Shown one piece after another: positions 877-26,281 of a stretch of 64,000 nt of DNA. Each line of letters opens with the position of its first letter. The first letter of the stretch is position 1. The translations under genes were made by a program, and so were the position numbers. The stretch is taken from positions 6,079,241 to 6,143,240 of the forward strand of contig OZ316899.1 of NCBI GenBank assembly GCA_973895155.1. The letters are read 5' to 3'. Origin of the DNA: Marsupella aquatica. Its lineage: Eukaryota; Plantae; Marchantiophyta. Under the pieces are notes generated by a model that saw only the letters and a program-made list of their open reading frames with translations, searched no databases and was not told where the DNA came from.

Positions 877-2658
877 ACCTGCGGCCGTTTTATCCCCACA
901 CTTCCAAGAGTGGTGCGTGGGGATCCACAACATCAGAAGAGCCCAGAGTCTCCCCCACTGGACATACCTCCTCCAAATTACGATGAGAGACAATAGGCTG
1001 ATCACGAGTTGCAGCGGCAATTCAGTGAACTGGAGGAAGCAACCCTGGCCAAGGAGAAGGATTTTCCAGGTAGAGGATGGCCAGAGGACATTTGGCGTCT
1101 TGCAGGGACTCAAGTCGGGCCTTTGCCCATGTTTGATGAGATACTGAGGGCGGCTTGGGAAAGAAGGCCGCATTGGGAGATGTTGGCATCTCCTAACCAC
1201 TGCACCTATGCATGTTCCAAAACCCTGGAGTATGGGAGGATGTGCGGGCTACTTGCCCTTGACATCTTTGGGGTAGAATTGGAGATGGGGCCTTTCATCC
1301 ACAAAGAGATGTTGGAGAAAAGCCGGTTGGAGTACGCACTGGCCTTGGAGAGGATGAAGAAAGAGGAAGTCATTTGGTGGCTAAGAGAGAAGGAAGCCAA
1401 GTCCGGAGATTTAAAGGCGGCCAAGCAGGCCCAGGACAAGCTACGATTTAGGAAGCATGAGATAAGCACCATGCAAGGGCAACTAGCCCAGACTCAGGAA
1501 GATTTGGCCAAAGCCCTCAAGGAGAACGAGAAGTGGCAGTAGGAGCTGAAGAAGGCAGAGGTAGCTCACATAATGGCCTGCAACAAAGCCATGACCGAGG
1601 CCTAGAGGAAGGAGCGAGCAGTGAAGGATGGGATCGAAGAATGCCGCAAGGCCCTCCATCAAAAGAAAGGCAAACTTGATGAGACCTACAGGGGCATCAA
1701 CAAGTTAAAAAGAAGACCTTGAGGACCTATCGGCCAACTTTCAAGCCGAGCTACGTAAGAAGGATGACATGCTTGATCAAACCTATGAGAAAATGAATAA
1801 GATCGAGTTTGATGTCGTCCATGAGCTCAACGCGGAGCTAAAAGCAACCCAAGAGGAGAGGGCGGCCTTACGAAAGGAGTTGGACGAGAACATAGCAAAG
1901 TTGGAGCAAGCCCGTGGGGATTTAGATGAGACCCTGGTGGAATTGGAGGACGCCACCCAGAAAATAGAAAATCTGCAGAGGCGGGCGGACAACCAAACTG
2001 AGCGATTGAAGAAGCAGTCCGAGGAACTAAATTGGCTGGCGCAACAAGTGAACCCCCGGTGGTGGCAACAGGGTTGCACAGCGTGGTACTGACTGAGCAA
2101 CAAGCCATTGTACCCTCACCTTTGCCGAAAGTAAGTGGCAAGGGGAAGGCACCAGCTGCTTGGGAGGGGAAGGACAAGAAGGGGAAGCCTTCTCGGTCAG
2201 GGAGCCACACCGTTTGTCAGGCCACCATGGTTGAGGTGGAGAGCATGGCATCGGCCTTATGCAAGGTTGTGGTTGTCAAGGAAGCAGTCCTGGAGGTAGG
2301 CCAAGAAGACTGGTTGGGGGAGGCCATGACAAGCACTGACTCAAGGTTGCCAACCATTGATCAGCATCAACCGCAACCTTGGGAGGATGAGACAACCCAA
2401 CTCATAGAACGAGCCTATGAGGAGGACCACTACGGCAGGGTAGCCGAGGCCAAGAGGGACAGTACAGAAGTAGTAGGGGTGAAACCCCCACTAGCCAAAG
2501 CCGGGCAGGCCAAGACCAAAGTAAGGATGGGGCCCGATCACGCCAAAGATAGGTTGACCCAGTTAGGAGCGGGTAACTTGTCAGAGGACAAGAAGCCTAC
2601 ATTGGCCGCCTAGGAAGGATTGGGGGCGTCAATTGAGGACCAGCCACCAGCGTTGTGA
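877..2658 (+). pseudogene. 3' half of the LTR-encoded coiled-coil protein gene (family C, 5' LTR copy)
   Basis: ORFs 1009-1542, 1769-2092 and 2032-2613 join through stops and frameshifts. Motif EYGRMCGLLALDIFGVELE is followed by a heptad-rich region. Ends EDQPPAL*, like family B DSDLPPVI*. Confidence 0.8.
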
Positions 2659-3145
2659 CGATGTAAGGGTGTCGTCCCTTTTAGAGAGGGCGGACGTGGA
2701 GGTAGGAGGCATGAGTGGGCAGAGCGGGTGCGGACCTCCAGATTTAGGATTAGGATCAGGACCAAGAAGCGGCCCTGACACTTAGATTAGTGGGATTGCA
2801 GATCCACTAGTAAGAGCAACACTTGTCCTCTTGCCCCGCTGTACATAGGTAGATTCCACTTAGAGGTAGATTTGGCTTACGCAACAAGGAAATAGGTAGG
2901 TACGCTGCCAGGATAAATACCTGGGCAGCGGGGACCATAGGGCCTTCTTCTTAAGTAAGTTTTTAGTGCACCAGCAAGGCTGGAATCAATTAGTAAAGAG
3001 AAGCTCTCGGTTAGTTATGCTGTGACCCTTGTGTAAATTCATGTTTCCTCATACCTAAGAGCTAACTAGAGTTGGCCTTTAGGCTTAGTTCGCAGGCCTT
3101 GTGTATGAGAAGTACTCCTTGTATGGCAATGGCATGGCATACCTT

Positions 3146-4103
3146 CCTTTGAAATGATTTTTTTTATAAAGATAAAGGCGGCCGCAAAAGCCCCACGGCC
3201 AGGGCAAACAGACAGCCAAACAGGCCACAAACCAGGACCCCAATCAACAAGGGGACCAAAGCAACAATGTGAAAACAAGCACATGGGGGCCAAAGCAACA
3301 GTGTGAAAAGGCCCAATACAATAAGAGCAGCACTGAAAGCAGCCCTTGCGGCAAGCAGCTCATAAGCCAGATGTGATACGGCCGCAGCCGTGTCGTATCC
3401 AGTTCCTACGAAGGGCATCAATCCATGTTTTGGCTCTAAGGATGCGGGTACCTTTCCGGCCCGGAGGAAGCCCCCGGCTAGCCACATAAAGGTTATCAGC
3501 CGTCTCCGAGAGAACCAGGCCCAAGTCAAAGACTCTACTGCCACCAGCCTAGAACATGTGCATGTTCCGGCCCAGCCAGATAGACCACAAGATCTGATAC
3601 AAGATAAAAAGCTTTGCAACATGGGCAGGGTCTTTCCCAAAAGCAACATCTAGCAAAGGCAGCAAACCCTGCCCAAACGACAAACAGAGTACACACAGGA
3701 ATGATTGGCATAACCGCCAACAGCAATCATCATGGACGCAGAAAACAAATAGGTGAGGGATGGTCTCCACCGTGCCATTGCAAAGCTTGCAGTCCCCGTT
3801 GCTCATCTCCAAATGCAGTGCCCGCGCACCAGTAAAAAGGCCACCTACAATAATGCGCCAGATAAACGTCTTGCCTCTAGTCGGCAAGTCAGAACTCCAA
3901 AGCTGAGACCAGACAGAGCCCCATTCACTCTCAGAGCGTGCCACAGACCAAATGTGGTTCCACCGAGAGAAAACATAGATTTGTGGCCTCAAAAATTGGT
4001 AGACACGGCAATTAGCAATCTTGAAGTCCTTCAAATTCTTAGGCTTGTCTACCCACCGCCACTATTTGGCATAGAGGAAGCAGTCAAACCTGTGAGCACG
4101 TGA
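3146..4103 (-). mobile_element. 5'-truncated L1-type LINE (ORF2 C-terminal zf-RVT region and 3' UTR)
   Basis: Flanked by a 14-bp TSD GCATGGCATACCTT (3132-3145 and 4104-4117). ORF 3549-4034 (RGKTFIWRIIVGGLFTGAR...CKLC...ETIPHLF) is homologous to the LINE at 50583-52097. Confidence 0.92.
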
Positions 4104-4510
4104 GCATGGCATACCTTAGTCAGTAGAAGTCATCTTTCTAATTGTGTGTCGCATCAACTTGTGTGAAGATTGCCCACATCAACCAAAGAGAGAAAGGAAG
4201 TTTAGAAGCAGGAAGAGTTGGATGTGTTGAGCTGAGAGGGATCTTAGCTGCTACCCAAGCCAATGGGGCATCATTTCGGGGGCGGAATCCAAACAAACCT
4301 GAAGGGAGACCGATGGAAAAGAGTAAGGAGAGGCCTAGAGTAGGCCGGATGCATATCTCATGACCCGATGAAGGATATGTCTAGTATATGTGGTTAAGAA
4401 GTAGAGAGGAGTTAGCAACGTCCCATGCCAATAAACCGCGGAACCGGTGGGAATCGGCTTGTTAAGGGAGGGTTCTTGGGGTTAGAGAGCCATGGGACGT
4501 GCCACATTTT

Positions 4511-4528
4511 TGGCGCTAGATGGAGGGG
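4511..4528 (+). promoter_or_regulatory. Primer-binding site, tRNA-Asn-like
   Basis: TGGCGCTAGATGGAGGGG is complementary, with one mismatch, to the 3' end of plant cytosolic tRNA-Asn (...CCCCTCCTTCTAGCGCCA). It lies 4 nt after the LTR end. Confidence 0.8.
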
Positions 4529-4576
4529 GCATTTCTTAAGCCGTGAGATATGGATCTAGGTAAAGAAGTGTAGGTA

Positions 4577-7094
4577 ATGACTGAACCTACACCGAGGAAG
4601 GAAAGAGCGATACAACGGGAGAGAGCTCTTTGCAGCAGATCACCAGGTGGCAGGAAACACAGCGAATGAGAGGGGCTGATAGAGCTAGTAGCTCCATAAT
4701 AGAGAGTGGTGTTGAGGAGGAGGAACAAAGGATCAGTTACCTGGAGTCCGTTCAATTCAAGCGTTAGCTCCCCAACAGAGAGCACGGGGGAACTAGAGGC
4801 ATGACCAGGAGAGAGGGGAGGAACCAGTTTGAGCCAACGGTCGCGCATCCATTACAAAGATTTCATGGCAGAGGAGACGAGGATCTTGATGAATGGTTGG
4901 ATGATTTCAAAGGGACGGCTGCAGCAAATGGAGAGTCGGCCATTAGGATGCAGATCCTTCCCGGTTTGTTCAAAGGTGAGGCAAGACCGTGGTACAAGGC
5001 ACTAGACGCTGAGGAGCAGGGCAATTGGGAACTCTTCAAATCATTGTTTGTCAAGGAGTTTTGACCCATTGGAACCTCAGAATTGGCTGTACTGAAGTTA
5101 GGATGACTTTGGTTCAAGGAGAACAAGTCCTTCCGGAAGTTCTTACAATGCTTCCAAAAGCTGGTAAGACAAAAAAAGACCAATGCATCGGAAGGTATGC
5201 AACTTCAATGGTTAGTAAATGCGTTACCACAGAAGATGAGCTTTGCAATTAGGAAGGAGAACCCGGAGACCTTAGCCGATGCAATTAGAGATATCCATTT
5301 ATATATTAATGCACATATCACCAGCCTGAAGAAACAATTCAAATCAGGGAGCTCATCATTTGATGAAGGATCAAACAAGAAGAAGAAGAAGAAGAAGAAT
5401 TCCAAGAAGTCGAGAAGTGACAACTCAAGCTCAGATAGTGAAAGTAGCAAGAGTGAGTCCTCTTCTAGCTCAGAGGAAGAAAAATCTAGGAAAAAGAAAG
5501 TCAGAAGGAGGAAGTTGAAGGTCAAAATAGAGACTAACCCTCCAGCCCCGAATAACCTCATAGCTCTTACTGACCAACTGCGGGCTATCATAGTAGAGGC
5601 TAAGCCAAAGAAGAAGGTAGTAGTCAAGGACAGCTCTATATGGTGTGCTTTATGTTATAAGACCGGACACCACAAAGATGCATGTCCTAACCCAAACTCT
5701 AGTCATGTCCGGAAAGTTACCAAGACCAGAAAAAATTAGGGAGAAGTAGAGTACTTCCTAGGGGATGCGGCTAATAGCATTTTTGGCATCAGCGAGACAA
5801 GAGCACAGGATCTGGCCGATCGCCCGGCATCCCTCTGGTCGGGATTAAGAAATAACCCAGGTGAAAATCCATCTATAGCTCCTAGGTCAAATGTACAGAG
5901 ATTTGCGGCATGCTATAACTGTGGTCAACCTGGACATTTTGCTAGAGAGTGCCCAAACGCAAGGAAACAGGGTAATGGGCAACCAACTCAGTTGTGTATG
6001 GGATGCCGTCAAGAGGGCCACATGCTGGGACAATGCCCCACTTGGTTGGTAGAATTGGCCGCTAATCAAAAACTCCTGCCGGTCAAGGTCCTGCCACCGG
6101 GCACAACACCAGGTGGAATTCAAATTAATCACATTGAACTGGGATGGCAGACAGATGCCGAGGCCGAATTTGGACCATCCGATGACGAGGTTGAGGCCTT
6201 ATCAACATTCTCAAAAGAAGAACTAGACCATGGCTGCTACCGGGTTTCTACTCATTCAACAAGAAGGAAGGAAAGGTGGGATGGTTTGGCCAAGAACAAG
6301 GGGGAGACCAAGGAGGAAGGGTCGACTCTTCATCAACATCAATGGAGGGAGAAGGAAGGGCACCAAAAACTCAAGTAAGCCCTAAGCCTACCAGTGATCC
6401 CAAACCTTCACAAGATAGTGATTTCAACAAGATCACCCCAAGCTATTCTACCCGTCCATTACGGCTAGTGTTAAGGAACAACTTCAAGAATTAGAGACGC
6501 TAGAGAATATCGAAGCTATAGCCAAGGATGTCAAGAGGGCCAAAGCGCTGTTTGTGGAACCTAGCGTTCAACAACAAGGCAAAGCCAAGAGAGAGAAATT
6601 GCCAAAAGAGAAACCCATAGTTCCCTATGACTTGGCTAAAGATGTACTAGAATCTAGAGTCTTGGCAATAGCAGGTCAACTTTTAAGGAATAGCCCGTAC
6701 TTCCAAAAACAATTAAGGAAGGCAATCCTAGGCAAACCAAGATTACCCAAGGTAGTACCCGATCCAACGTGTTGATGATAGAAGAAGATCAAGGAGCCCC
6801 AGCACTACCATTAATGATCCAGGGAGAATTATTGCTATGTGTACCCATCGATAGAGGATCAGGGGTATGTATTATGATTGATTCAACCGCAATTGGATGG
6901 GGGTTAACACCAGAGAGTACTGGAAGAGTGTTAAACATGGCCAATGGCTATCAGGTCATTCCCATGGGAGTCCTCACCGACATCAAAACTTAAATAGGAG
7001 GAGTCTTGTTCAGTATGATCAACTATGTGGTAATGAGGCCGGTGAACCCTACATCATTCCGCCTACTGATTGGCAGGCCGTGGCTCTACATAGC
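4577..7094 (+). pseudogene. gag: Family C gag (three CCHC knuckles) and aspartic protease N-terminal part, disrupted
   Basis: FHGRGDEDLDEWLDDF gag motif, a Ser/Lys-rich tract, knuckles CALCYKTGHHKDAC / CYNCGQPGHFAREC / CMGCRQEGHMLGQC, and protease ID[R]GSG ... LLIGRPWLY. Multiple stops and frameshifts; cut by element A at 7095. Confidence 0.88.
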
Positions 7095-7453
7095 TGTGAC
7101 GCCGCCGGTATGGCGGTTAATGAGTGATTCGGTCTAACTGCGCTCGGCACGCGCGTTAGGAGTGTCTTAGACCGCTATTATTAGCACAACGACAGTATTT
7201 AGGTAATCATTATGGGTAGGATATCATTAGGCAATAAGGGGGAATTCAGGTTCGGACTGGCGGCTGGTCGCTATTTGCACACCCGGGTTACGAGCGTGGA
7301 GGGGCCCCTCCCTCGGGTCCGTATAACAAACTTAAGGAAGCGGCCACTGACACGCGCTGACTCAGACTGGCGGAGTGGCCGGCACACCACAAGCGTGAAC
7401 GGTTCAGCCTATGGGCGTCGAGGAGACGTCGGGGGATCGACAAGCGCTCAAGG

Positions 7454-7460
7454 TATAAAA
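7454..7460 (+). promoter_or_regulatory. Candidate TATA box upstream of the LTR-encoded gene
   Basis: GGTATAAAAGGGG lies ~105 nt upstream of ATG 7562 and is conserved at 17549 and, in the diverged solo LTR, at 27237. Confidence 0.6.
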
Positions 7461-7561
7461 GGGGAGCCAACCCTTTGTAGTGCACCAGTCCATCAGTCCA
7501 CGCGCCAGCTTCGACCCCAACTCTCTCGTTCGCTCTAAGTCGCCACTACTATCTCCTCTGA

Positions 7562-10197
7562 ATGTCGCACATGATCCTCTCCAGCTCGGCCATTTGATTC
7601 TGGACGCAGTTCCTATCTACCGGGAGGCACTTGGCCGACTCATTGAAACATGCCAACCCGCGCCGATACGAAATCGAACGCGAGTACGAGCGAGCCATCC
7701 GCCTAGCAGGACGACACCACTACATCCTTAACTTTGACTACCCGTCTCAGAGCAAGCTTTACCGACCAGCAAAGGTATCCGGGTACTTCTTCAACGGAGA
7801 CAAATATATCGGGTTCTGGGAAGCATTGCTTCGGCTTCCGGACGAGGTCTTCAATATCCCGGGTACGATCGACTTGCAGCGACATCACTTCGACCACATC
7901 CCTGCTCAGGTTCGGGCTATCATCAACAGCGAGTCCAGCACTACCCGTTCGACAAGGTCGTCTGCCCTCGCTTCGGAGAACTTCTACCAGCACCTACAGA
8001 GCTTCATAGGAGCTCGGCCAACAACCAACATGACCAACTCAGTTGTACCCGTACCCATACCCGTACAACCTCAGGCTCAGCTTCAGCTTCAGCCTCAGCC
8101 GCAGCCTAGCCAAACCCCACCACCGATCGCCCAGCCAGCACAAGTACGCTCCGTCATCAACGCTGTGGATCTTAGCGATGACGACGAGGCTACCCTACCC
8201 TTGACCAGGCGGCCCAGAGGAACAAGCGCTCAGGGGCCGATACTATATCGTCCCCACCCCCTGCTCTGACCCCAGGAGCGGCCCCGACAGACAACATGGT
8301 GACCGTGGCCGACCTGGGCCCGTTACTAACGGCAGTAGCACTACCCAGGCCCGATCGGGAGGATGGGGAGGTGTCACCTTCCCCAAGCCAGTCACGGGGG
8401 AAGAAGAGGAAGGAATCCGCCACTGCATCCGGGTTACCATTGGCCACGGTAGCCGTGGCCAAGGTGATGATGCACCGCATGGGGGAAAACGTTCACAAAA
8501 ACATCCTCCATCCCAAGCATACGGTGTACCTGAAGACTCAGGGATTCGAGCACCTCGCCTCCCTCCCCTAGAACACTTGCAGGTACTACGGGGAGGACAT
8601 GACGGAGTTCGTCAGGAATTATGACGACGCGCGTCAACATACTCAGCTACGGGGAAGGAGTATGTCCCTCACGGAAGAACGGCTCAGGATGATCTTCGGG
8701 TTACCCGAAGGTGACCATCGAGTCGAATCACGGGCTCCCGGGGGCAAGGGAGCCAAGTACCAATCTTCAAGTTTTCCCTCAGAGGGAGCAGTGGACAACG
8801 GGTTCGTGATGAAAACCTGCCTCATCCCCGAGATAGCTGAGCGACTGGAGTTCCAGAGGTACGGCCTCCACATGATGGAACCCCGGGGGGAGATCTCTGT
8901 CGCCCAGGTTATCCAGGTCGAGAACTATCGACCTAGGAGGTGGGCGTCGTACTTCGCTAAGAAATTCCATGAAGAGATGGAGCGGCGAAGGAAGACGCTA
9001 TACATTGGCGGGAAGGCGTATTTCGCTAGCCACATCGAGATCATTCTTGAGTGGTACGCCCGGTTTGATCGACGAACCCTTCCCCGTGTCAACGTTACAA
9101 AGCTGGTCCCAGCTAGGTGGGTTTTCCCGGCCTTGGAGAGACGGCCCCAGCCCGAGGCCCGAAGTCCAGCGGACACGCCAGCTTCACCCACCCCACCTCC
9201 ACAAGTAGCTGTAGTCGTAACCGAGGAGGTGCCGGATGGGTCGGGTGTCGCAACCGTTGATGCGACCCAACAGGCCGGGCTAAGTACAGAAGTCGGTACG
9301 GCGGAGGTCTTACCCGAGCCCGGTTCTCCCAAAGACCCACCGGTGGCTATTCCGGAGAACCGGACATTGCTACAGGAGGACGCTCCAGCCCCTTCCAACG
9401 TTACGTCCCCAGGGCTGGACGTCACTGCCCCGGCCCCCGCGCGTGTGGACGTCTGCCCGTGCCCAACTCCGGACAGGCACAACCTGGACCACCCGGAACT
9501 CTTCGTACCGGGTACATTTCTGAACGGGCTTCTGGGAGATTTCTCTCATCAAATTGCCCGGGATACCGGGGAGTTCATGGCCCGGAAGGTAGCCTGTTTC
9601 TTCAATCAGGAGTTGGTTGCCGCAGTAAAGGCAGGTCGGGCCCAGTCAGAGGCCCTTCAGAGGATAGAGCGGTACCGGGTGGAGTCCGTGTACCTAAAGA
9701 ACGAAGTTGCGGCTCAAGAGGCTGAGCTTCGGCAACTACGACCCAAGGTTGCAGCCGCCGATGAGTTGTTAGCAAAGGCGCACGCTCTTACCGCCCTAGC
9801 CGAACAGGCCAAAGCTGGGAACGAAGCCGAGATTACACGACTCCGGAACCAGATTGACAGTTTGAAGAATCAAACTGTCACCTAGCAGAAAGACCTGGAG
9901 GAGGCCGAGGAACGGGCCCAGCGGGACACGGCGGAGATAGCCACGCTGCAGGCCGAGGTGGCGCGGCTCCAAACCGAGGTCGAGAAGCAGGACCAGCTGG
10001 CGGGTAAACTGACAAGTGACGCCCAGCAGTTGGAGGAGGCTTGTCAGGAGGCAGCGGAGGAGACGGACGCGGCGAGGCGAGAGAACGAATCTCTGCTGGA
10101 CCAGGTCCAGCTCCTCAAGGCGGACAATGACAGGCTTCGAAGGCAGCGGGATGGCCGCTCCCATTCAGGTGGCTCTGGCAAGCGTGCCAGGCATTAG
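7562..10197 (+). pseudogene. LTR-encoded protein, family A (novel N-terminal domain + Transposase_32/PMD-like domain + coiled coil), ~880 aa reconstructed
   Basis: ATG 7562 is in frame with ORF 7631-8269. One frameshift near 8250 leads into 8296-8571 / 8599-9885 / 9958-10197, which share one frame and are separated by TGG>TAG stops. The 3' LTR copy reads through the 9885 stop. Confidence 0.8.
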
Positions 10198-11117
10198 CGG
10201 TGGAGTAGGAATAGAGTAGGATTAGGACTAGCTTAGTCAGGCTCTTGGGACAGGCACCTGCCTTAGGTACAGCTTCGCTGCCGTGCTGTCCAGCCTGCAT
10301 AGATTAGGATCTTCTAATAAGACACAGCCGTTTCCGGCCTGACTGTCAGCTTAGTTAGGACCGTAGTCAGTGAATCTTCGGCGAGAGGACACCCCGTCCC
10401 TCGGCCCTTAGTATTTAGTGCACCCCTCGGTAGAGTCGAGGGGGGGGGGGGTTTTAGTTGCAAAGTTGGGCGTCCGCGGTATGTGCGGGGAGTCCCGACC
10501 TCTGGGAATGAAAGAGTACCAAGGGGAGGGGGTAGGACTAAGCTCGCCGGGCGAGTGCGAGTGCGGAGCCGGGCTCCGTTGTAGTGTGCACCCTCGGCCT
10601 TGAACCTGTTCATTCCGGGGCTGTCGGGTCAACTAAGTGTACGCATATGTTCCCTTTGTAGTAAAATCCTTTCCCATCATTTTCCTTCGTGTAAATCGAG
10701 ATTGTATGCATGTGTGCGTGTATGTGTGTGGGTTTCTCGTATATGGGTGGCAGCGCCAGGCCGAACGCACTACCCGAGACGTGCACAGGGTGCAGCCTGC
10801 GGGTAAGTCGTTGCGAGCACGGGTTGAGGACCTGTATCATCGAATCTGGATCGAAGGCGGACAGCACGAAGGCTTAGAAGTCCTTAAGCCGGGGTCGATC
10901 CTGCTATCGACTAAGGTACGTTCCGGGGGCGGAACACAAACCATACCTAGGAGGTGTCTGTATTTAGCAGTATGTGCACTTAGCGCTAGTTTACAAGAAT
11001 AAGGTGCATTACGTGCTTCCCTTCCTGCCCGAACCCTCAGATTTACGAGGGATGTGCCCGTCTAAGCTGAAGTCTGAGTTAAGGCCGCAGCCGATGACGT
11101 GACATAGCCTTTGTTTT

Positions 11118-11135
11118 TGGCGCTAGATGGAGGGG
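11118..11135 (+). promoter_or_regulatory. Primer-binding site, tRNA-Asn-like
   Basis: TGGCGCTAGATGGAGGGG, identical to the PBS of families B and C. Confidence 0.8.
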
Positions 11136-11228
11136 GCACTCTACATATCGTAGAGGGGAGACATGTGCGTATTCACCTAGGCAGGATACATCAGGACGTA
11201 GTACTAACCATCGCATTTATATGAGTAA

Positions 11229-14200
11229 ATGCCCGTCACTCGTTCTCAAGCAGCTTACTTGAGGAGATTGACCAGCGAACGAGAAAGTGCAACCACGACA
11301 AGTTCCAATTCTTCAGACTCGGAAGACTCGCACTCGCCCCGACATATGAACATACCCCCGGGACCTTCGGGGTCCGGTTCGACCGGTCCTCCTGCGGTTC
11401 CACCGCCACCACCACCACCACCTATGGCAGCCGCTCCACCGATGGCCCGCGCTGCTCAAGCTCCTCCACAAATATCGCAACGATCGCGATTTCATTATCG
11501 ACCTTTCAAGGGGCGTCATGGGGATGATCCGGATGAATGGTTGGATGAGTTTGAAGCCACTGCCAAAGCTAATGGGGAAGATGCCATTAAGCTAACCGTC
11601 CTCCCGGGAGTGATGCGGGGAGAAGCTCGTCCATGGTACAACTCGTTGCCACCCGGGACTACATGGGCACAATTCCAAGCTGCATTGCTGCAGGAGTTTC
11701 GTGCCATTGGATCGGAACAGCATTCTCTATTAAAGATTGGCCAGCTTCGCATGGGAAAGAAGGAGTCCCTGCGGAAGTTCATTCAGAAGTTTCAGAAACT
11801 TGCGGCCAAGATCCGGCCCAGGCCGGGAGACGCGCTCCAGCTTACATGGTTCCTTCATGGTTTGCCCACGAATATGCAATTTTGGGTACGCCAGAATAAT
11901 CCGATTTCAATGCAGGCGGCCATAGCGTGCGCCGAAACTTACCGGGAGTCCACCTATAACTCCCGGCGGAGCCAGCGAGCACGCCGCAAGAAGGGTAAGT
12001 ACGAGACCTTCAGTGACAGTGACTCCGAATCGGACGACGAGAGGAAGAAGAAACGCAAGAAGAAAAAGAAACATCGTTCGACCTCGTCCAGCTCGGAGAC
12101 GGAATCCAGTTCAGATTTAGCTTCAAGCACCGGATCCTCTACCTCCAGTTCATCAGGAAGCGACTCGGAGAGCGAAAGCCGGAGCAAAAAGAAGAAGAGA
12201 CGAGTGAAGAAGGAGGGGAAGATCAAACCCCAGGCGCGAAGAACGATACCAGATCCAAAGGCTGCCGAAGCAGACAAGCTGAACGAAATCATGGATCGAC
12301 TCAAAGCACTGTCAGTACATCTTGCGGAAAAGCCGGTGAAGAAGAAGAAGCCATCTGAGATTCGAGCCCATGCGTGGTGTTCAAAGTGCTTCCAATCCGG
12401 CCATGTGGTGCAGGAATGCCCAAGGTGGAAGAATCGAGTTCACCAAGTAGAGCTGGATGATGTTGACAACCCGGGTCCCGAATCGGAGTCCACAGAGTAT
12501 TTCTTTGAGGACCCTCCTGATTCCGTGTACCAGATTTCAACGGTAGGTCCGCGTAATTTAGCGGGTAGAACTGCGTACCCCTACCCAAACAATGGCCGGA
12601 GTTTCCAGGTTATCAGTAACCCGAGCATCCCTCCTAAGCCAGGGATTTGGCGATCCCCGGTTTGTTATAACTGTGAAAAGCCAGGACACTTTGCAAGGGA
12701 ATGCACCGAACCAAGACGTCAGGGAGATGGCCGAGGCACCCCACTATGTCAAGTCTGCAAAACGGAGGCTCATTCCACGGCCAACTGTCCGTTGGTAATC
12801 GCTGCTCGAACGAGCGCAGCTAGACCGGCCCAGGCTGGACCGGCCACGAGCGATGCAGTCGTCCAAATGATTGCTGTAGAATGGCAAGATGACAACACCG
12901 AGTGGGTGAATTTGGTGGATGTAGCAGAGCACCCTGATCCATTGGATGAGGCCGAGTGCTACCGAGTGTCGACAAGGGCCAAACGGAAGGAAGAGAAGAC
13001 GGAGGAGAAACGAAGGAAAAAGCAAGATACTACTCCGGTGCAGCCAGCGATAGATATACCCCCAGAGAAGGACAATGACTACCGACGGGACGACCCGAAG
13101 CTATTTTTCCCCCGCATCAAAGAATTGGTAAAGAAACAGCTGGAGGCCTACGAAGCTCGGGAATACCAGAAGGCAATCGATAAGGACATCAAAGCAGCCG
13201 AGACCGCCCGGCGCCAGGAGCAAGAGGAGCAAGAAAAGCAAGAGGAAGCCAAGCTGCAGCCGAAAGAGGATAAAAAGGAGAACTACGATATTAAGGAAGA
13301 CGTGAAGAGTTGCCCGGTTACAGCGACGGTGGGGCAACTGCTGCAGAATAACCCACAGTACAGACGGCAACTAAGGGAGTTGCTCATGGGTCGCTGAAGG
13401 AGGAGACTACCCCGAGTTGGGATCGCGGACTGCAACATGATATGCGAGGACCTTGGAGCGCCGGACATCTCGATCGAAATTAATAATTGTACCATCAAGA
13501 TGGTTCTTGTAGACGGAGGAGCGGGAGTCAACATCATGACTGAAGAAACGTCAGTCAAGTTAGGATACCTCACGTATCAACCCACAGCCCGAGCTATCAG
13601 ATTAGCAAACGGGGCAAGGGTCCTCCCATTAGGCACGCTCACACGAGTGCTCACTCTGGTGGGAGGGGTGGAGTTCTATCTCAACTTCCTAGTTATGAGG
13701 CCGGTTCGTCCCTCCTCTTACCCGGTTCTTCTAGGCAGGCCATGGCTGTACGGTGGCCGCGTAGTCACGGATTGGGGAAAGAAGGAGCTACGGTTCGGGG
13801 AACCCACCGTACGGGTATCATGGGCAATGGACGATTATCAAGGAGAAACCCCACAAGGACCCGAGGAATATGATTCGGAGACCTCGGAGGAAGAGGAACT
13901 CAATATGATTGAACTCATCTCGTCCCTGTCCGAGGAAGATGTCTTCGGAGTTGAAGCAACCTGCAAAACACATCTCCTAAATTACCCGAGGGCTGCCATT
14001 GAGTCCACCCCAAGCACATCTACTGCCGGGGATGAGGAAACGCACGAACAACTCGTCGAGACGGAGGACACGGCTCCAGCTAAGCAGGGAGCCGAGGCTG
14101 CTTCTACCGTTGAAGAGCCTCGTGACCACGAACCAGCCCAACAACCGCCCGAGGCTGAAAACTCGAGACCGAGACATAAGAAACGAGTCTCATGGGTTCC

Positions 14201-17200
14201 GTCCATTCCGCAATTGGAGGAAGTAACTCCAATCCCAAGACCAATCCCGGTTCCACCCATGTACGGAGGAGTTCGGTTAGCCGAGCTTGATGTGAGCCTG
14301 GACCCGAGCCTGCGAAACCAGGTTGAAGTCATCAGGAAGGAGCACTACCGGAAGTACACCATTGGGATGGACAAATCTTTTAACCTGGGCCACGCTCTGA
14401 CAGGGGAGGCTGAAAAATCCATCCAAGCTTTGCTCAAGGAATATGAAGATGTGTTTGCATGGAGTCATCATGATTTAACAGGCGTCTCCCCCGAGTTGGG
14501 AGAACACACGATCGATCTGAACCTAGGAGCCCATGCGGTACGGCAGCGACAACGTCGCATGAACCCGAGGTACTCCATCTTAGTGAAGGAGGAAATTGAT
14601 CGTCTCCTCGCCGCCGATATCATCTACCTGGTAATGGCCAGCGACTGGGTCTCTCCCATTGTCATTGTACCAAAGAAGGGAGGTACGGATGGAAAACCTA
14701 AGATTCGTATTTGTCAAGACTACCATAAGCTGAACGACGCAACCCGCAAAGACCATTACCCATTACCATTCACAGATATGGTTCTAGATATGGTAGCCCG
14801 AAATGAAATCTATACATTTCTTGACGGGTATTCAGGTTATAACCAAATCTGGATTCGCCTCGCGGATCAGCTCAAAACAACTTTCACTACGGAGTGGGGG
14901 ACTTTCGCATTTCGGAGGATGCCTTTCGGTCTGTGTAACGCCCCGGCCATGTTTCAGCGCCTGATGATGAATATCTTCCACAATTTCCTACGAGAATTTC
15001 TGGAGATATTTATCGATGACTTTGCCATCTTCGGAACCGTTGCCATGCACCCCGAACACCTCAGACGAACGTTGCAACGATGCCGAGATGTCAACCTCAA
15101 ACTACATCCCGCCAAATGCTTCTTCGGGGTAGAGGAGGGGGTGTTACTCGGGCATCGTGTGTCCAAACGGGGCATTGAGGTGGACCAAGAGAAAGTTGCG
15201 GCCTGGATGGCAGTGGTGTTCCCCGTGGATCAAAAAGCAGTACGATCCTTCTTGGGCTGCGTAGGGTATTACCGTCGGTTCATTAAAGATTTTGCTAAAA
15301 TAGCTTTGCCCCTAACAGAGATGATGAAAAAGGATGCGGTGATCGAGGAGACCCCAAGGAGACGGGTTGCTTTCGAAGAACTCCGTAAAAGACTCACCAT
15401 CGCACCTATCATGGTCACTCCAGACTGGAACAAGGAGTTCCACGTGTATGTCGACGTGTCAGGGTTCTGTATCGGGTCTATGCTTAGTCAGCTTGATACA
15501 GACGGACGCGATCACCCCATCTACTTCGCTAGCCGACAATTATTCACAGCCAAAAAAAATTATTCCCCCACGGATTGAGAGGCACTGGGCATAATCTACT
15601 CATGTAAGAAGTTCCGGCACTATCTGCTCGGCTACAAGGTCATCTTCCACACGGATCACGACAGCCTGAAGTACATGGTCAACAAAGCAGACGTAACGGG
15701 ACGGATAGCCCGTTGGGTGCTACTTCTCCAGGAATTTAACTACGAAGTTCGGGTTCGGCCAGGAAAGGCACACCTCAATGCCGACTTCTTTTCACGGCTG
15801 GACGGCGTACCAGTCGATCAGCCAATTGATGATATTTTTCCGGATGAGGAGTTGTTCCACGTAGGGGAGGGGACACCAACGTGGTACGGCTCGATAATCA
15901 CCTTCCTTTTAACAGGCCGCATCCCTGACGGCATCAATCAGGAGGCCGCCGCTGTGTTTCTACGGAAAGCCGGGCCTTACGTCATGGTACAGGGTCACCT
16001 ACATAAGGAAGGAGTTAATGGGAAGTTACGACGCTGCTTGGAGTATAAGGAGACGCTTATCGTGATGCGGGCCTTGCATGAAGAAGAAACTGGAGGCCAT
16101 TTCGCGGCGGTCACGACAGCCCGAAAGATTCTGGACTCGGGGTATTGGTGGTCGACGTTGCATCGGGATGTACAGCGCTTCATTAAGGGCTGTGACCTGT
16201 GTCAGCGGGCTGGGGCCCCGAGACGGGCTCATCATCACCCGCTCACATCTGTGCTTCCATTGGCACCATTCAAAAAATGGGGAATTGATTATATCGGGCC
16301 GTTTACTCCCGTTACCCGAAGGCGAAGATGCAGGTACATCCTACTAGCTATTGATTACTCCACCAAGTGGGTCGAAGCGCGGACTACGGTAAAGGACGAT
16401 GCCGCAACCAGTGCCAGATTCTTACACGAACAGATTTTCACCCGATTCGGCCCGCCCTTAGAATTGGTAAGCGACCGTGGAACCCACTTCCTCAATGACA
16501 CCGTAGCCCAGCTTACGGAGCGTTACCTAGTCAAGCACCGCAAGACTACCCCGTATCATCCTTAAGCCAACGGGATGGCGGAGAGAGCAAATGGTATCAT
16601 TGGGAAGATCCTCAACAAAACTGTAGCTGCGCACAAAACGGATTGGGATGATAAGTTGTACGCAGCGGTGTACTCGTATAATCTCGCTTACAAAACTACT
16701 ACGAGTCACAGCCCGTACTTTCTCGTGTTCGGCCAACATTCGTTGGTGCCCGTCGAGTTTGAAATACACACTCCACGAGTCAGCATTCGGGATCGCTTAC
16801 CTGAATCTGAAAGTTCGTCAGACCGAGCTTATCAGATTGAAGCCTTGGAAGAAGCACGGCTACTAGCAGCTCGACACGCCGTGAAGAAACAGGCAACTTC
16901 GAAGAAGCAGCACGACAAAGGACTACGAAGGGTCGACGTCGTGGCAGGCGATCGAGTCCTTCTGTACGATAGTAGGTACATGCAGTTTCCAGGGAAGCTT
17001 CATACCCGGTGGTTAGGGCCCTTCCTTGTCAATCAGATCTACCGTAACGGATCTTTAGAGCTTGCGACGTATGCCGGCGATTTACTCCCCACGCAAATCA
17101 GCTACGATCGTGTAAAAAAGTACCACCATCAAGATGACGACGCCGAGAATGGTGTTCGCGAGGACGCTTCACAATTAAGCAGGGAGCTATGTGATGCCGC

Positions 17201-17222
17201 CGGTACGGCGGTTAATGAGTGA
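11229..17222 (+). pseudogene. gag-pol: Family A gag-pol polyprotein (gag, 3 CCHC, PR, RT, RNase H, INT), single frame with three premature stops
   Basis: ORFs 11229-13397, 13437-15578, 15675-16565 and 16575-17222 are all in one frame. Motifs: VDGGAG (PR), LDGYSGYNQI/FIDD (RT), GGHF...CDLCQ, WGIDY, SDRG (INT), FPGKLHTRWLGPF (Athila-like GPF). No chromodomain; the stop lies inside the 3' LTR. Confidence 0.95.
17173..17189 (+). promoter_or_regulatory. Polypurine-tract region of element A
   Basis: AATTAAGCAGGGAGCTA lies immediately before the 3' LTR TG. The equivalent AATTAAGTGGGGAGCTA precedes 31281. Confidence 0.75.
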
Positions 17223-20200
17223 TTCGGTCTAACTGCGCTCGGCACGCGCGTTAGGAGTGTCTTAGACCGCTATTATTAGCATAACGACAGTATTTAGGTA
17301 ATCATTATGGGTAGGATATCATTAGGCAATAAGGGGGAATTCAGGTTCGGACTGGCGGTTGGTCGCTATTCGCACACCCGGGTTACGAGCGTGGAGGGGC
17401 CCCTCCCTCGGGTCCGTATAACGAACTTAAGGAAGCGGCCACTGACACGCGCTGACTCAGACCGGCGGAGTGGCCGGCACACCACAAGCGTGAACGGTTC
17501 AACCTATGGGCGTCGAGGAGACGTCAGGGGATCGACAAGCGCTCAAGGTATAAAAGGGGAGCCAACCCTTTGTAGTGCACCAGTCCATCAGTCCACGCGC
17601 CAGCTTCGACCCCAACTCTCTCGTTCGCTCTAAGTCGCCACTACTATCTCCTCTGAATGTCGCACACGATCCTCTCCAGCTCGGCCATTCGATTCTGGAC
17701 GCAGTTCCTATCTACCGGGAGGCACTTGGCCGACTCATTGAAACACGCCAACCCGCGCCGATACGAAATCGAACACGAGTACGAGCGAGCCATCCGCCTA
17801 GCAGGATGACACCACTACATCCTTAACTTTGACTACCCATCTCAGAGCGAGCTTTACCGACCAGCAGAGGTATCCGGGTACTTCTTCAACGGAGACAAAT
17901 ATATGGGGTTTTGGGAAGCATTGCTTCGGCTTCCGGACGAGGTCTTCAATATCCCGGGTACGATCGACTTGCAGCGACATCACTTTGACCACATCCCTGC
18001 TCAAGTTCGGGCTATCATCAACAGCGAGTCCAGCACTACCCGTTCGACAAGGTCGTCTGCCCTCGCTTCGGAGAACTTCTACCAGCACCTACAGAGCTTC
18101 ATAGGAGCTCAGCCAACAACCAACATGACCAACTCAGTTGTACCCATACCCGTACCCATACAACCTCAGGCTCAGCTTCAGCTTCAGCCTCAGCCGCAGC
18201 CTAGCCAAACCCCACCACCGATCGCCCAGCCAGCACAAGTTCGTCAGGAATTATGACGACGCGCGTCAACATACTCGGCTACGGGGAAGGAGTATGTCCC
18301 TCACGGAAGAACGGCTCAGGATGATCTTTGGGTTACCCGAAGGTGACCATCGAGTCGAATCACGGGCTCCCGGGGGCAAGGGAGCCAAGTACCAATCTTC
18401 AATTTCTCCCTCAGAGGGAGCAGTGGACAACGGGTTCGTGATGAAAACCTGCCTCATCCCCGAGATAGCTGAGCGACTGGAGTTCCAGAGGTACGGCCTC
18501 CACATGATGGAACCCCGGGGGGAGATCTCTGCCGCCCAGGTTATCCAGGTCGAGAACTATCGACCTAGGAGGTGGGCGTCGTACTTCGCTAAGAAATTCC
18601 ATGAAGAGATGGAGCGGCGAAGGAAGACGCTATACATTGGCGGGAAGGCGTATTTCGCTAGCCACATCGAGATCATTCTTGAGTGGTACGCCCGGTTTGA
18701 TCGACGAACCCTTCCCCGTGTCAACGTTACAAAGCTGGTCCCAGCTAGGTGGGTTTTCCCGGCCTTGGAGAGACGGCCCCAGCCCGAGGCCCGAAGTCCA
18801 GCGGACACGCCAACTTCACCCACCCCACCTCCACAAGTAGCTATAGTCGTAACCGAGGAGGTACCGGATGGGTCGGGTGTCGCAACCGTTGATGCGACCC
18901 AACAGGCCGGGCTAAGTACAGAAGTCGGTACGGCGGAGGTCTTACCCGAGCCCGGTTCTCCCAAAGACCCACCGGTGGCTATTCCGGAGAACCGGACATT
19001 GCTACAGGAGGACGCTCCAGCCCCTTCCAACGTTACGTCCCCAGGGCTGGACGTCACTGCCCCGGCCCCCGCGCGTGTGGACGTCTGCCCGTGCCCAACT
19101 CCGGACAGGCACAACCTGGACCACTCGGAACTCTTCGTACCGGGTACATTTCTGAACGGGCTTCTGGGAGATTTCTCTCATCAAATTGCCCGGGATACCG
19201 GGGAGTTCATGGCCCGGAAGGTAGCCTGTTTCTTCAATCAGGAGTTGGTTGCCGCAGTAAAGGCGGGTCGGGCCCAGTCAGAGGCCCTTCTGAGGATAGA
19301 GCGGTACCGGGTGGAGTCCGTGTACCTAAAGAACGAAGTTGCGGCTCAAGAGGCTGAGCTTCGGCAACTACGACCCAAGGTTGCAGCCACCGATGAGTTG
19401 TTAGCAAAGGCGCACGCTCTTACCGCCCTAGCCGAACAGGCCAAAGCTGGGAACGAAGCCGAGATTACACGACTCCGGAACCAGATTGATAGTTTGAAGA
19501 ATCAAACTGTCACCTGGCAGAAAGACCTGGAGGAGGCCGAGGAACGGGCCCAGCGGGACACGGCGGAGATAGCCACGCTGCAGGCCGAGGTGGCGCGGCT
19601 CCAAACCGAGGTCGAGAAGCAGGACCAGCTGGCGGGTAAACTGACAAGTGACGCCCAGCAGTTGGAGGAGGCTTGTCAGGAGGCAGCGGAGGAGACGGAT
19701 GCGGCGAGGCGAGAGAACGAATCTCTGCTGGACCAGGTCCAGCTCCTCAAGGCGGACAATGACAGGCTTCGAAGGCAGTGGGATGGCCGCTCCCATTCAG
19801 GTGGCTCTGGCAAGCGTGCCAGGCATTAGCGGCGGAGTAGGAATAGAGTAGGATTAGGACTAGCTTAGTCAGGCTCTTGGGACAGGCACCTGCCTTAGGT
19901 ACAGCTTCGCTGCCGTGCTGTCCAGCCTGCATAGATTAGGATCTTCTAATAAGACAGCCGTTTCCGGCCTGACTGTCAGCTTAGTTAGGACCGTAGTCAG
20001 TGAATCTTCGGCGAGAGGACACCCCGTCCCTCGGCCCTTAGTATTTAGTGCACCCCTCGGTAGAGTCGAGGGGGGGGGGTTTTAGTTGCAAAGTTGGCGT
20101 CCGCGGTATGTGCGGGGAGTCCCGACCTCTGGGAATGAAAGAGTACCAAGGGGAGGGGGTAGGATTAAGCTCGTCGGGCAAGTGCGGAGCCGGGCTCCGT

Positions 20201-20579
20201 TGTAGTGTGCACCCTTGGCCTTGAACCTGTTCATTCCGGGGCTGTCGGGTCAACTAAGTGTACGCATATGTTCCCTTTGTAGTAAAATCCTTCCCCATCA
20301 TTCTCCTTCGTGTAAATCGAGATTGTATGCATGTGCGCATGTATGTGTGTGGGTTTCTCGTATATGGGTGGCAGCGCCAGGCCGAACGCACTACCCGAGA
20401 CGTGCACAGGGTGCAGCCTGCGGGTAAGTGGTTGCGAGCACGGGTTGAGGACCTGTATCATCGAATCTGGATCAAAGGCGGACAGCACGAAGGCTTAGAA
20501 GTCCTTAAGCCGGGGTCGATCCTGCTATCGACTAAGGTACGTTCCGGCGGCGGAACACAAACCATACCTAGGAGGTGTC
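17190..20579 (+). repeat. Family A 3' LTR with a 463-bp internal deletion and ~145-bp 3' truncation
   Basis: Colinear with 7095-10958. 8146-8608 is missing at 18240/18241. Stops at GGAGGTGTC and joins host RT. Confidence 0.93.
17657..19829 (+). pseudogene. Second copy of the LTR-encoded gene (family A, 3' LTR)
   Basis: MSHTILSSSAIRFWTQF... start at 17657, a stop at ~17807, an internal deletion, then open frame 18138-19829 through the whole coiled coil. Confidence 0.82.
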
Positions 20580-21677
20580 ATGACTACTTGAGAAAGTTCA
20601 TGGAGATTTTCATTGACGATTTTGCAGTGTTTGGGAAAGCATCAAAACATGCTAAATACCTCAAGAAGACTTTCATGAGATGTAGGGAGGTGAGCCTCAA
20701 ATTACACCCTAATAAATGTTTCTTTGGGGTAATGGAGGGGGTGCTACTCAGTCACAAGGTATCAAAGAAAGGTATTGAGATTGACAAGGGCAAACTAGTA
20801 GTATGGTTGGATATCATGTAACCTAAGAACATAAAGGACATTCGATCCTTCTTGGGATGCATTGGCTATTATCGTAGATTCATCAAAGATTTTGCCAAAC
20901 TAGCATTACCTTTGACAAATACGCTCAAAGCAAGAGCAGACTTCAAACCCACACCAGAGAGAGTGACAACAGTAATTGCATTGAAAGAGATGCTAGTTGA
21001 GGCCCCAGTCATGATAGCACCAGACTGGAACAAGGAATTTCATGTCTTTGTAGATGTTTCAGGCTTCTGTATCGGTTTGCTACAAAGTCAGTTAGATGAG
21101 AAAGGAAGAGACCATCCCATATACTATGCAAGCCGCCAGCTTGCCAATGTCGAGAGAAACTACTCAACCACAGAAAGGGAAGCTTTAGGAGTCATTTACT
21201 CTTGCAAAAAGTTTAGGCATTATCTACTAGGTTATAAGGTAATCTTTCATACCGATCATGAAAGTTTAAAGTACCTAGTGAATAAACCAGATCTTACGGG
21301 CAGAGTGGCAAGATGGATATTGCTATTATAGGAATTTGACTATGAGTTAAAAATCAAGCTAGGGAAACTACATGCCAATGCCGACTTCTTAATTTTCAAG
21401 AATTGCAGGTCAACCAGCTACGGACTGCATCAACGATCGATTTCCAAACAAAGAGCTATTCATAGTGGAAGTAACGGATACCTGGTACCCCGACATATTA
21501 CAATTTCTCAGTACATCAAGATTAGAAGCAGGGGTAAGCAGGGAACAAGCCGCAATTTTTTTACAAAAGGCCAGACAGTATCAGTGCATTAAAGGCATCT
21601 TACACAGGCATGGAGTCAATGGAAAAATTCAAAGGTGTTTGGAACAGGGCAAAGTGAAGCAGGTCTTACACGCTATG
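20580..21677 (+). pseudogene. pol: Family C pol: RT C-terminal half, RNase H, integrase N-terminus
   Basis: HDYLRKFMEIFIDDF, GYYRRFIKDF, FVDVSG, NYSTTEREALG, HTDH. Interrupted at VLHAM by element B. Confidence 0.92.
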
Positions 21678-24600: not shown

Positions 24601-26259
24601 GAGATCCTGCAGATCTTAAATGAGGAGCTGAAGACGGCCAGGGCCAAGATACTACGGCTTAACGATGAAGTTGGAGACGTATCTCAGGAATTGGAGGAGG
24701 CCAAGGATAAGATGATCGGGTTGCAGAGGCGTGCCAACAATCAAACGCATAAATTGAAGAAGTATGCCAAAGCGGGATATGGGTCACCAACTGAAAGGCT
24801 TCCCCATCAGTAGTATGGTAGGCAGAAATATAGTGAAGCCGAAGCCGAAGCCAAGCTCCCCGTTGTCAAGCGTGACTGGGGGCAAAGCCATGCAGTTGGT
24901 GGCAGACTTGGCAAAGACGTTCATGGGGCCAGGCGATAATAAAGTTAAGGCCCTTAAAGCCACTCCGGAGGAAGTCGAGAGCATGGCCGCTCACATTTGT
25001 GGTACTGTGGTACTGTGGCCCTGAAGGCAGTTGTGGTAGAGGTAAGTACTACGGATCAACTTGGAGCTGCGGTAACAGGTTTAGACGATGGTACTGCTTC
25101 TATGGACGCACAAAACGTGAAGCCGTGGGTTATCAAGATCGAGCGCATCGAGGAAAAGGCTTGGATTGAGGAAGTTAAGGCAAAGGCTCTCCAAGCCGTT
25201 TCCCAGGAGGATGCGGATGCCGATGCCGAGACCAAGGCCGGGGCCGACAAACCAGAAGCCAAAGTCGAGGAAGCCGAAGGGGTCAGGCCGGGGCTGATGG
25301 CAGGAGAAGGTGCAGAGTCGGAAGATTCGGACTTACCCCCGGTCATCTGACAATTAAGGAGGGCCAGTCATCGGTTGGAAGGAGGACGTGGCGGCAAGAG
25401 AAGGGCTTGGGCCAGAAGGGCGCGGCCGTTGTAGGATGGGACAGGGCAAGTAGCGCCCTGTCGGCTTAGGTAGTAGTAGATGCTCGGTTCACACAGGGTT
25501 CCGGGCTATTCAAGTTTTTAGGTGATAGTTTTTTGGTAGGATTATCGCGGTGGAAGGCCGTGTGTGGTGGTTAGGATTTCCGTTTGTTTTTTCCTGAATA
25601 CGCTGCAAGGATAAAAACCTGGGTAGCGTGGCTTCGGGGGGCTTTTTCTTAGTCAAGGCTTTAGTGTTAATCTGTATTGTTGTGAGCACAGGAAGCTCTC
25701 GGCTAAATCTAGACCACAGGGTATCAATAAACCACCAGTTCCCTTGGATTTCTGAGCAATTGTTTGAATTGAGTTGGCCTCGTTGCATAGTTCGCAGATT
25801 CTTGCCATCCAAGAAATTGAGTGTTATGATATTTGTTGCTTGATCGATTTAAGTCAGATAGGGTGAACTGTTGAACAAAATACAATCGCATTGTCTTGAT
25901 TGGAAACTGCCCAATCAAACTCTGAGAGAAAAGTGAGGATTGAGAGTGTTAGTCGGTGAAGTGTGGGTTGAGTCAGTCTGAAAAAGACCTTCAGCCGGCT
26001 TAAGAAATTAAGCCGTAGAGGTACATTCCGGGGGCGGAATACAAATATACCTGAAGCAGTTAAAGAGGAATTAGGTGTCTCAGTTGTGCACAATTCACAA
26101 GCCCAGTGAAAGAATCGGTCCGGTAAGTGTGGATCGAAGGAGAGTATCGCGTTTCCAAGCCGAATAGTTGCCATAAGGCAAGAGGACGGACATTAACAAG
26201 TGGTTTATGATCGGTTGAGGGTAGTTCTTGGGGTTAGAGGTCTTGGGAAACGTGCCACA
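21678..26259 (+). repeat. Family B LTR, 4582 bp, gene-bearing
   Basis: Ends GGGAAACGTGCCACA followed by TTTT and the PBS at 26264. The terminal segment is repeated at 26488-26534. Confidence 0.9.
22028..25350 (+). pseudogene. LTR-encoded protein, family B, ~1100 aa reconstructed
   Basis: ATG 22028 MNTVNQARKFWGCLL..., ORFs 22259-22972, 23108-23980, 23881-24813 and 24764-25350. Homologous along its length to the family C copy (FRSFPGPSTKNG, EYG.MCGLLAL.IFG.ELE). Confidence 0.82.
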
Positions 26260-26263
26260 TTTT

Positions 26264-26281
26264 TGGCGCTAGATGGAGGGG
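26264..26281 (+). promoter_or_regulatory. Primer-binding site, tRNA-Asn-like
   Basis: TGGCGCTAGATGGAGGGG, 4 nt after the family B LTR. Confidence 0.8.

Follow-up and report, generated by a model that had tools for sequence, protein, structure and literature searches.

Introduction

In plant retrotransposons, the long terminal repeats (LTRs) are regarded as control regions that do not encode protein. Genes in or overlapping an LTR are known from retroviruses, where sag of mouse mammary tumour virus (MMTV) lies in U3 and nef of human immunodeficiency virus (HIV) overlaps U3. In gypsy retrotransposons of the Ogre/Tat/Athila (OTA) group, extra open reading frames (ORFs) with PMD, Transposase_28 or Athila ORF-1 domains are found in the internal region (PMC6317226, PMC3485330). 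Reviews of additional ORFs (PMC7264820) and of giant transposons (PMC6431247) place extra ORFs only between the LTRs and mention no gene inside an LTR, and Tat elements without an additional RNase H have been described from liverworts (PMC13468544). Here we describe Ty3/gypsy elements of the liverwort Marsupella aquatica in which an accessory gene lies inside the LTR itself. They were found in a stretch of 64,000 nucleotides (GenBank assembly GCA_973895155.1, contig OZ316899.1, positions 6,079,241–6,143,240 of the forward strand), which we call the window and number from its first letter, and they had been proposed in an earlier reading made from the letters alone (the sequence-only reading).

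The second system that bears on these elements is VANC21, a DUF1985 protein encoded by the Arabidopsis Mutator-like transposon VANDAL21. This protein acts on the transposon that encodes it, binding short motifs in the non-coding parts and removing DNA methylation (PMC5735166). The PMD-C domain of MAIL1 has been stated to be structurally similar to the VANC DUF1985 domain (preprint 10.1101/2024.09.27.615353).

Results

The 4-kb repeats are LTRs of three gypsy families

Positions 1–35000 of the window, resolved by self-comparison and by tblastn with the proteins of element A, consist of one old gypsy element, H, and three later insertions (Table 1). The 4-kb repeats in this region are true LTRs of three Ty3/gypsy families of the liverwort type, without a chromodomain hit: A with its subfamily A′, B, and C, the family of H. 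The repeats have TG..CA termini and flank gag and pol; those of element A are 97.6–98.4% identical to each other by self-comparison. In A, gag (11229–13397) starts 124 bp after the 5′ repeat, and gag and pol (13437–17222) together encode Retrotrans_gag, zf-CCHC, protease (PR), RVT_1, RNase H and integrase (IN) domains as judged by Pfam. The end of pol extends 33 nt into the 3′ repeat, just past the polypurine tract (PPT) AAGCAGGGAG. We detected neither an extra ORF nor a chromodomain hit in the internal region (11229–17222), in agreement with the earlier claim that pol runs straight into the PPT and LTR. The gene described below ends 920 bp upstream of the primer-binding site (PBS) of A, i.e. 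it does not lie between PBS and gag as the 5′ extra ORF of Ogre/Tat elements does.

A PBS-like motif follows the 5′ repeat directly and a PPT directly precedes the 3′ repeat; purine tracts were seen before the 3′ LTRs of both A and H. When the first 16 nt of the motif (TGGCGCTAGATGGAGG) were searched in the window, there were three occurrences where 0.01 would be expected by chance. Each stands 4–13 nt after a repeat end: at 11118 in A, at 4511 in H (four nt after GTGCCACA) and at 26264 in B. The full 21 nt were read in these three elements, and the 16-nt core is identical among them and in two elements of Calypogeia fissa (L002 and L003).

The insertions in H give further evidence. The 4582-bp B LTR is followed by TTTT, the PBS, a leader of ~195 bp and the last 53 bp of a 3′ LTR, and a perfect CTATG duplication flanks the whole (21673–21677 and 26535–26539). 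This unit is thus no plain solo LTR but an element with an internal deletion, and it shows that the end of the 4.6-kb unit is precisely the one expected of an LTR. The sequence-only reading had given 4582 bp for the B LTR; 21678–26534 also holds the PBS, leader and 3′ LTR end. A′ is a solo LTR with the termini of A; it is flanked by CAAGG and CACGA, a degenerate duplication (3/5), and removal of the LTR plus 5 bp restores the integrase frame of the host. The target duplication of element A could not be checked because its 3′ LTR is truncated. The TG..CA termini, PBS, PPT, CTATG duplication and solo LTR A′ all bear out the earlier view that the repeats are LTRs and not segmental duplications.

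We also consulted public runs, which were available as contigs only, of unspecified library kind and without transcript starts, ends or strand. In three of the four runs, summed contig depth was ~5–6 times higher over 7197–11136 than over gag, with a step near 11136, and in run X4 the PPT-to-LTR junction appeared as a loose end or alternative sequence to the left of 7095. Because the depths are rough, they lend soft support only. Contigs of runs X1 and X2 join 10284 back to 7093 (3192 bases back); this joint may stem from the insertion of one LTR into another or from the rearrangement of a copy.

A homologous gene occupies two thirds of each LTR

The LTRs of A, A′, B and C, which are 3.6–4.6 kb long, each contain a homologous sense gene of ~880–1100 codons. 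It takes up approximately two thirds of the LTR, and its coding stretch begins 350–470 bp from the LTR start (plus-strand coordinates in Table 1). In translation, the products share one layout: an ‘FW’ region at the N-terminus is joined by a low-complexity linker to a central domain, and a second linker leads on to a short G..F..EL-type motif and the C-terminal region. The central domain is globular and ~180 residues long, the linker before it is disordered, and the C-terminal region gave only weak coiled-coil matches in Pfam. When the central domains of A, A′, B and C were aligned, 27 columns were invariant and A was 24–28% identical to B and C. The common architecture that had been proposed across the families is thus visible in the translations.

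The copy in the 5′ LTR of A (A5) has in-frame stops at 7595, 8569 and 9883 and one frameshift near 8232. Copy A3, in the 3′ LTR, has a 461-bp deletion, and the B and C copies have several frameshifts each. At 7595 and ~8232, most public-run contigs read another letter or length than A5, so that at least these two breaks look private to this copy. Long sense reading frames in the LTRs of A, B and C had been reported by the sequence-only reading; we recovered homologous sense coding at those places in A, A′, B and C, although none of it is continuous, and stretch 1–870, which had been counted as sense, turned out to be a minus-strand fragment of a C-type gene.

The LTR gene has been under purifying selection

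The gene was under purifying selection while the families diverged. In a comparison of A5 with A′ over 729 aligned codons, made without joining across breaks, synonymous divergence (pS) was 0.61 and non-synonymous divergence (pN) 0.19, corresponding to an omega (dN/dS) of 0.17 and not to the value of about 1 that the sequence-only reading had named as telling against it. The synonymous excess was highly significant (binomial p = 2e-46), and divergence at codon positions 1, 2 and 3 was 0.229, 0.191 and 0.457. Between B and C, pN was 0.34 and synonymous sites were saturated. The two LTRs of A differ by 10 synonymous and 19 non-synonymous changes (omega 0.6, p = 0.14), and the two LTRs of H gave an omega of 0.63 with a marginal synonymous excess (p = 0.04). 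Near-neutral values of this kind are expected between two LTRs of one element because such a pair diverges only after insertion. We regard the layout, a gene inside the LTR, and selection on that gene as jointly close to certain.

The non-coding ends of the A and A′ LTRs (7095–7561 and 10470–11104 vs 26877–27342 and 29885–30508) are 82–90% identical. These 470 bp at the 5′ side and 640 bp at the 3′ side differ much less than do synonymous sites within the gene, which would reflect either strong sequence constraint (a promoter, a leader or a target of the protein) or exchange between the subfamilies.

The predicted fold of the central domain resembles that of VANC21

AlphaFold models of the central domain had a pLDDT of 81 overall for A′, with most of residues 1–183 above 90, and of 88 for C. 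We aligned the models exhaustively with 48,161 structural chains. For both, the sole match above Z 5 was 9lnk_A, VANC21 bound to DNA: model 1 aligned over 186 residues with Z 6.5 and a root-mean-square deviation (rmsd) of 4.3 (next chain, Z 2.6), and model 2 over 168 residues with Z 6.9 and an rmsd of 4.0 (next chain, Z 2.0). The match extends over the full domain and was obtained with two sequences of ~25% identity, consistent with a fold shared with the DNA-binding domain of VANC21. In the ESM Atlas, the model of homologue P0070 had Transposase_32 (TM 0.70) and PMD clusters (TM 0.63–0.68) as structural neighbours, the PMD neighbours being seen for P0070 only; an Atlas feature search with P0070 gave a DUF1985 cluster at 0.86, which we treat as a lead only. 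Foldseek returned nothing below E 0.001 from the PDB; from BFVD it returned one viral protein at E 0.006.

Comparison with Pfam profiles placed the domain apart from named families. Neither the window pieces nor 32 homologues matched PMD (PF10536) up to E = 1–5, window pieces and homologues did not match PF09331 (DUF1985), and no Transposase_28 match reached threshold. Three distant homologues matched Transposase_32 (PF20167) below threshold, with 11.8–17 bits over profile positions 16–87 (gathering score 45 bits). By sequence, the central domain is a family of its own within the fold group to which we assign it. The outlying VANC21 matches, the neighbours of P0070 and the published resemblance between PMD-C and DUF1985 lead us to place it, with fairly high confidence, in the PMD/Transposase_32/DUF1985 (VANC) fold group. 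The PMD-like accessory protein of the sequence-only reading therefore has a counterpart at the level of fold (VANC21, Z 6.5 and 6.9; PMD and Transposase_32, TM 0.63–0.70) but not in Pfam, where PMD and Transposase_32 stay below threshold.

Homologues of the LTR gene occur in other liverworts

A search with a profile of the central domain recovered 61 proteins among 1.84 billion representatives (best match 9e-31), and all name-bearing matches were from the liverworts Calypogeia fissa or Riccia sorocarpa. At C. fissa locus L002, a repeat starts at 9016 and is followed by the gene (10001–11893), the identical PBS (14151) and gag-pol up to 20430; the repeat returns from 20413 with the N-terminal start of the gene. 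At locus L003, the LTR runs from 8738, with the gene at 9539–11890, the PBS at 13656 and the 3′ LTR from 19927; a second pol end and then a third type of the gene are also present. The presence of the layout at both loci indicates that it is older than the families in the window and not peculiar to one genome.

Several other matches differ from these two. At C. fissa L001 (5782–10001), a homologous gene lies ~4.2 kb past the end of pol, far more than in the other elements, and may mark a longer LTR or an insertion. In R. sorocarpa proteins P0048 and P0057, the central domain follows a DDE_Tnp_4 (PIF/Harbinger-type) fragment; the domain family may also travel with DNA transposons, or the gene models may be merged. 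Logan contig L004, which contains homologue P0016, has no pol, PBS or poly(A) tail and is for this reason uninformative on transcripts. A single-sequence search of a 5.8-billion-protein set with the A3 gene piece gave no match, and one with homologue P0042 returned only P0042 itself and one relative; neither search bridged to PMD or Transposase_32.

Candidate transcript signals allow several layouts of the LTR

A TATA box before the gene and a block with AATAAG after it, both shared by A and A′ (Table 1), fit a self-contained cassette. An AT-rich, TATA-like site ~140 nt short of the LTR end is common to these two LTRs as well. No TATA box was seen upstream of the gene in families B and C or at loci L002 and L003. 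At L002, the sole TATA is 86 bp before the PBS; this position would suit a genomic-RNA promoter that follows the gene, which would then lie in U3. The limits of U3, R and U5 are not settled by TATA and poly(A)-like hexamers. The gene could sit in U3 as a cassette of its own; it could sit in a long R, with termination yielding the gene mRNA and read-through the genomic RNA; or it could be the first cistron in U5. We consider placement in U3 and placement in R or U5 evenly balanced.

Nested insertions and neighbouring sequence

Element A was inserted in the protease region of H at 7095. The integrase of H was split by the 4857-bp unit 21678–26534, at a position aligning to residue 134 of the integrase-region ORF of A (15675–16565), and again by the 3632-bp unit 26877–30508, between residues 245 and 249 of the same ORF. 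At 20579, a deletion joins the 3′ LTR of A, without its last ~530 bp, directly to the reverse transcriptase (RT) of H, and ~410 codons of H are missing between protease and RT.

At the left edge of the window, the minus-strand C-type gene fragment 1–871 abuts the sense-oriented 5′ LTR of H at 877 of the plus strand. Both arms cover a stretch equivalent to ~33366–33548, and the arrangement looks like an inverted-duplication junction. Positions 3186–3911, inside the 5′ LTR of H, are 67% similar to 50362–51134; they may have been inserted there, in which case the greater than expected length of this LTR would be accounted for. The 3′ LTR of H is cut at 34942 by unrelated AT-rich DNA (34943–36400), beyond which lie three long minus-strand ORFs (36441–40952; 314, 543 and 619 aa). 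A short tandem duplication of 96% identity is present at 49436–49872, in a region labelled a CACTA element in a separate note on the window.

Table 1. Coordinates of the gypsy elements, their LTR genes and associated signals in the window
Feature	Position	Strand	Remarks
5′ LTR of A	7095–11104	+	4010 bp, TGTGAC...GTGACA; within protease region of H
Putative TATAAAA box	7454–7460	+	~105 nt upstream of gene ATG; conserved in A′ at 27237
LTR gene copy A5	7562–10197	+	FW domain, linker, VANC/PMD-like domain (~8458–9100), linker, putative coiled coil (~9600–10194)
Non-coding block	10296–10324	+	~120 nt after stop, identical in A and A′; AATAAG at 10316, possible poly(A) signal
PBS-like motif of A, TGGCGCTAGATGGAGGGGGCA	11118–11138	+	13 nt past LTR end
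gag and pol of A	11229–17222	+	PR, RT, RNase H, IN
Polypurine tract of A, AAGCAGGGAG	17177–17186	+	3 nt before 3′ LTR
3′ LTR of A	17190–20579	+	461-bp internal deletion; cut at 20579, where host RT resumes; gene copy 17657–19829
LTR of family B	21678–26259	+	4582 bp, TGTGATG...GTGCCACA; gene 22028–25350
Remainder of B unit	26264–26534	+	PBS 26264–26284, ~195 bp leader, last 53 bp of 3′ LTR (26482–26534)
Solo LTR A′	26877–30508	+	3632 bp, ~82% nucleotide identity to A; inside H integrase; gene 27343–29657
Inverted fragment of C-related LTR gene	1–871	−	
5′ LTR of H (family C)	877–4506	+	Without first ~2.1 kb; ends in GTGCCACA; C-terminal part of gene 877–2658; PBS 4511–4531
H gag	5551–6736		
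H protease	6775–7089		
H RT and RNase H	20579–21677		
H integrase, interrupted pieces	26537–26872 and 30519–31289		
3′ LTR of H (family C)	31281–34942	+	After PPT AAGTGGGGAG; cut at 34942; gene 31661–34942

Discussion

The liverwort elements are most readily compared with those of the OTA group, such as Ogre (ORF1 with PMD), Retand (with Transposase_28) and rice Retrosat2 (ORF0). Like these, they are Ty3/gypsy elements with very long LTRs and without a chromodomain hit (PMC6317226, PMC3485330, PMC7264820), and they have a sense accessory ORF upstream of gag, with a domain that probably belongs to the PMD-type fold group. The OTA ORF lies between PBS and gag or between pol and PPT, and OTA LTRs are described as non-coding, whereas the ORF here is upstream of the PBS and downstream of the PPT, that is, inside the LTR, and matches none of the Pfam families PMD, Transposase_28 and Transposase_32 above threshold. 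The gene may have been moved there from elsewhere in the element, as the sequence-only reading proposed: it would be enough for the PBS or the PPT to shift across an extra ORF that was once internal. Full-text literature searches for phrases describing ORFs inside LTRs returned nothing relevant, and no such layout was found for plant elements. In having a protein-coding gene in the terminal repeat, and hence twice per provirus, MMTV (sag) and HIV (nef) offer a parallel, but these are animal retroviruses whose proteins are unrelated and are expressed from spliced or LTR-internal transcripts.

Because the gene lies between PPT and PBS, it is duplicated by reverse transcription, which leaves two copies per element and one per solo LTR. 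This is as the sequence-only reading had it, and we find the gene in both LTRs of A and in the solo LTR A′. As to what the product does, we lean, by a modest margin, towards a conserved LTR-borne gene whose product, of VANC/PMD-type fold, binds DNA or chromatin and sustains transcription of its own LTR. The protein would most likely bind DNA or chromatin, may oligomerise through its coiled coil, and would act on the LTRs of its own element to keep them transcribed. An anti-silencing or activator role as such is suggested by analogy with VANC21 and is a tentative proposal. VANC21 is likewise encoded by a transposon, appears to share the fold (9lnk_A) and has conserved domains with variable or disordered regions between them. 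It differs in belonging to an angiosperm DNA transposon, in having no detectable sequence similarity to the liverwort proteins, and in having dense motif arrays as its targets, of which none were seen in the LTRs here; the N-terminal domain and C-terminal coiled coil of the liverwort proteins were unmatched by the VANC21 chain in our searches. A more specific version, that each LTR, solo LTRs included, is a promoter–gene–terminator unit whose VANC/PMD-fold protein binds the conserved non-coding ends of its own LTR family and protects them from silencing, is in our view unlikely. If it did hold, a gene inside the repeat would form a dispersed, multi-copy supply of activator that outlives loss of the rest of the element.

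Several observations weigh against the role that we favour. No copy in the window is open from start to stop. No Pfam family was above threshold for the window pieces or the 32 homologues, sequence profiles run against the PDB gave coiled-coil noise only, with no sequence-level match to VANC21 or another solved structure, and the Z scores of 6.5–6.9 are middling on the tool's own scale; a shared fold is in any case no proof of a shared function. The non-coding parts of the LTRs show no tandem arrays and no enriched 7–9-mers, unlike the targets of VANC21. Finally, ARAGORN found no tRNA in the window that matches the PBS.

The lack of VANC-style motif arrays in the LTRs would also suit a protein that serves replication or integration, either as a chromatin tether steering integration or as a nucleic-acid or particle-assembly factor, with fold and coiled coil acting on the cDNA or the target site. 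Architecture and selection would be the same as under a role in LTR transcription, and extra ORFs with PMD or Transposase_28 domains are common in Ogre and Retand without a shown role (PMC6317226). We nevertheless consider such an accessory function rather unlikely: the one relative with a solved structure is an anti-silencing factor, host proteins with PMD-C act against silencing (10.1101/2024.09.27.615353), and nothing points specifically to integration. A different concern is that every copy in the window is broken and that the domain also occurs beside DDE_Tnp_4 in Riccia proteins, as might be expected if a gene of the host or of a DNA transposon had been captured a single time into an LTR and were decaying there as a passenger, of no service to the element. 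The contrast between an omega of 0.17 between subfamilies and one of ~0.6 between the LTRs of one element makes this very unlikely, as does the retention of the gene at the same place in another genus and in three families whose proteins are ~25% identical; of the breaks in A5, at least the stop at 7595 and the frameshift at ~8232 look private to that copy.

The truncated 3′ copy of A, with its target duplication uncheckable, is what could still be held against the repeats being LTRs at all. The gene would then be internal, as an Ogre-like ORF upstream of gag, and its duplication would come from tandem or recombined elements. We rejected tandem elements as the explanation, and the reading as a whole is barely credible, since the PBS is downstream of the gene in every family, the solo LTR A′ within integrase is bounded precisely by the repeat termini, and the B unit, which finishes with the same LTR terminus, has a perfect 5-bp duplication.

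A gene under selection has thus been inside the LTR since before the families split, in a layout common to two liverwort genera. For annotation, this means that solo LTRs become gene copies. It also poses a mechanistic question about reverse transcription and transcription, as the strong-stop DNA or the R region would have to be several kb long unless the gene is nested in U3. If the assignment of the central domain is right, LTR retrotransposons of an early-diverging land-plant lineage would be linked to a fold group, PMD/VANC, in which the known members act against silencing, and it is this link that makes a retrotransposon-borne anti-silencing factor directly testable.

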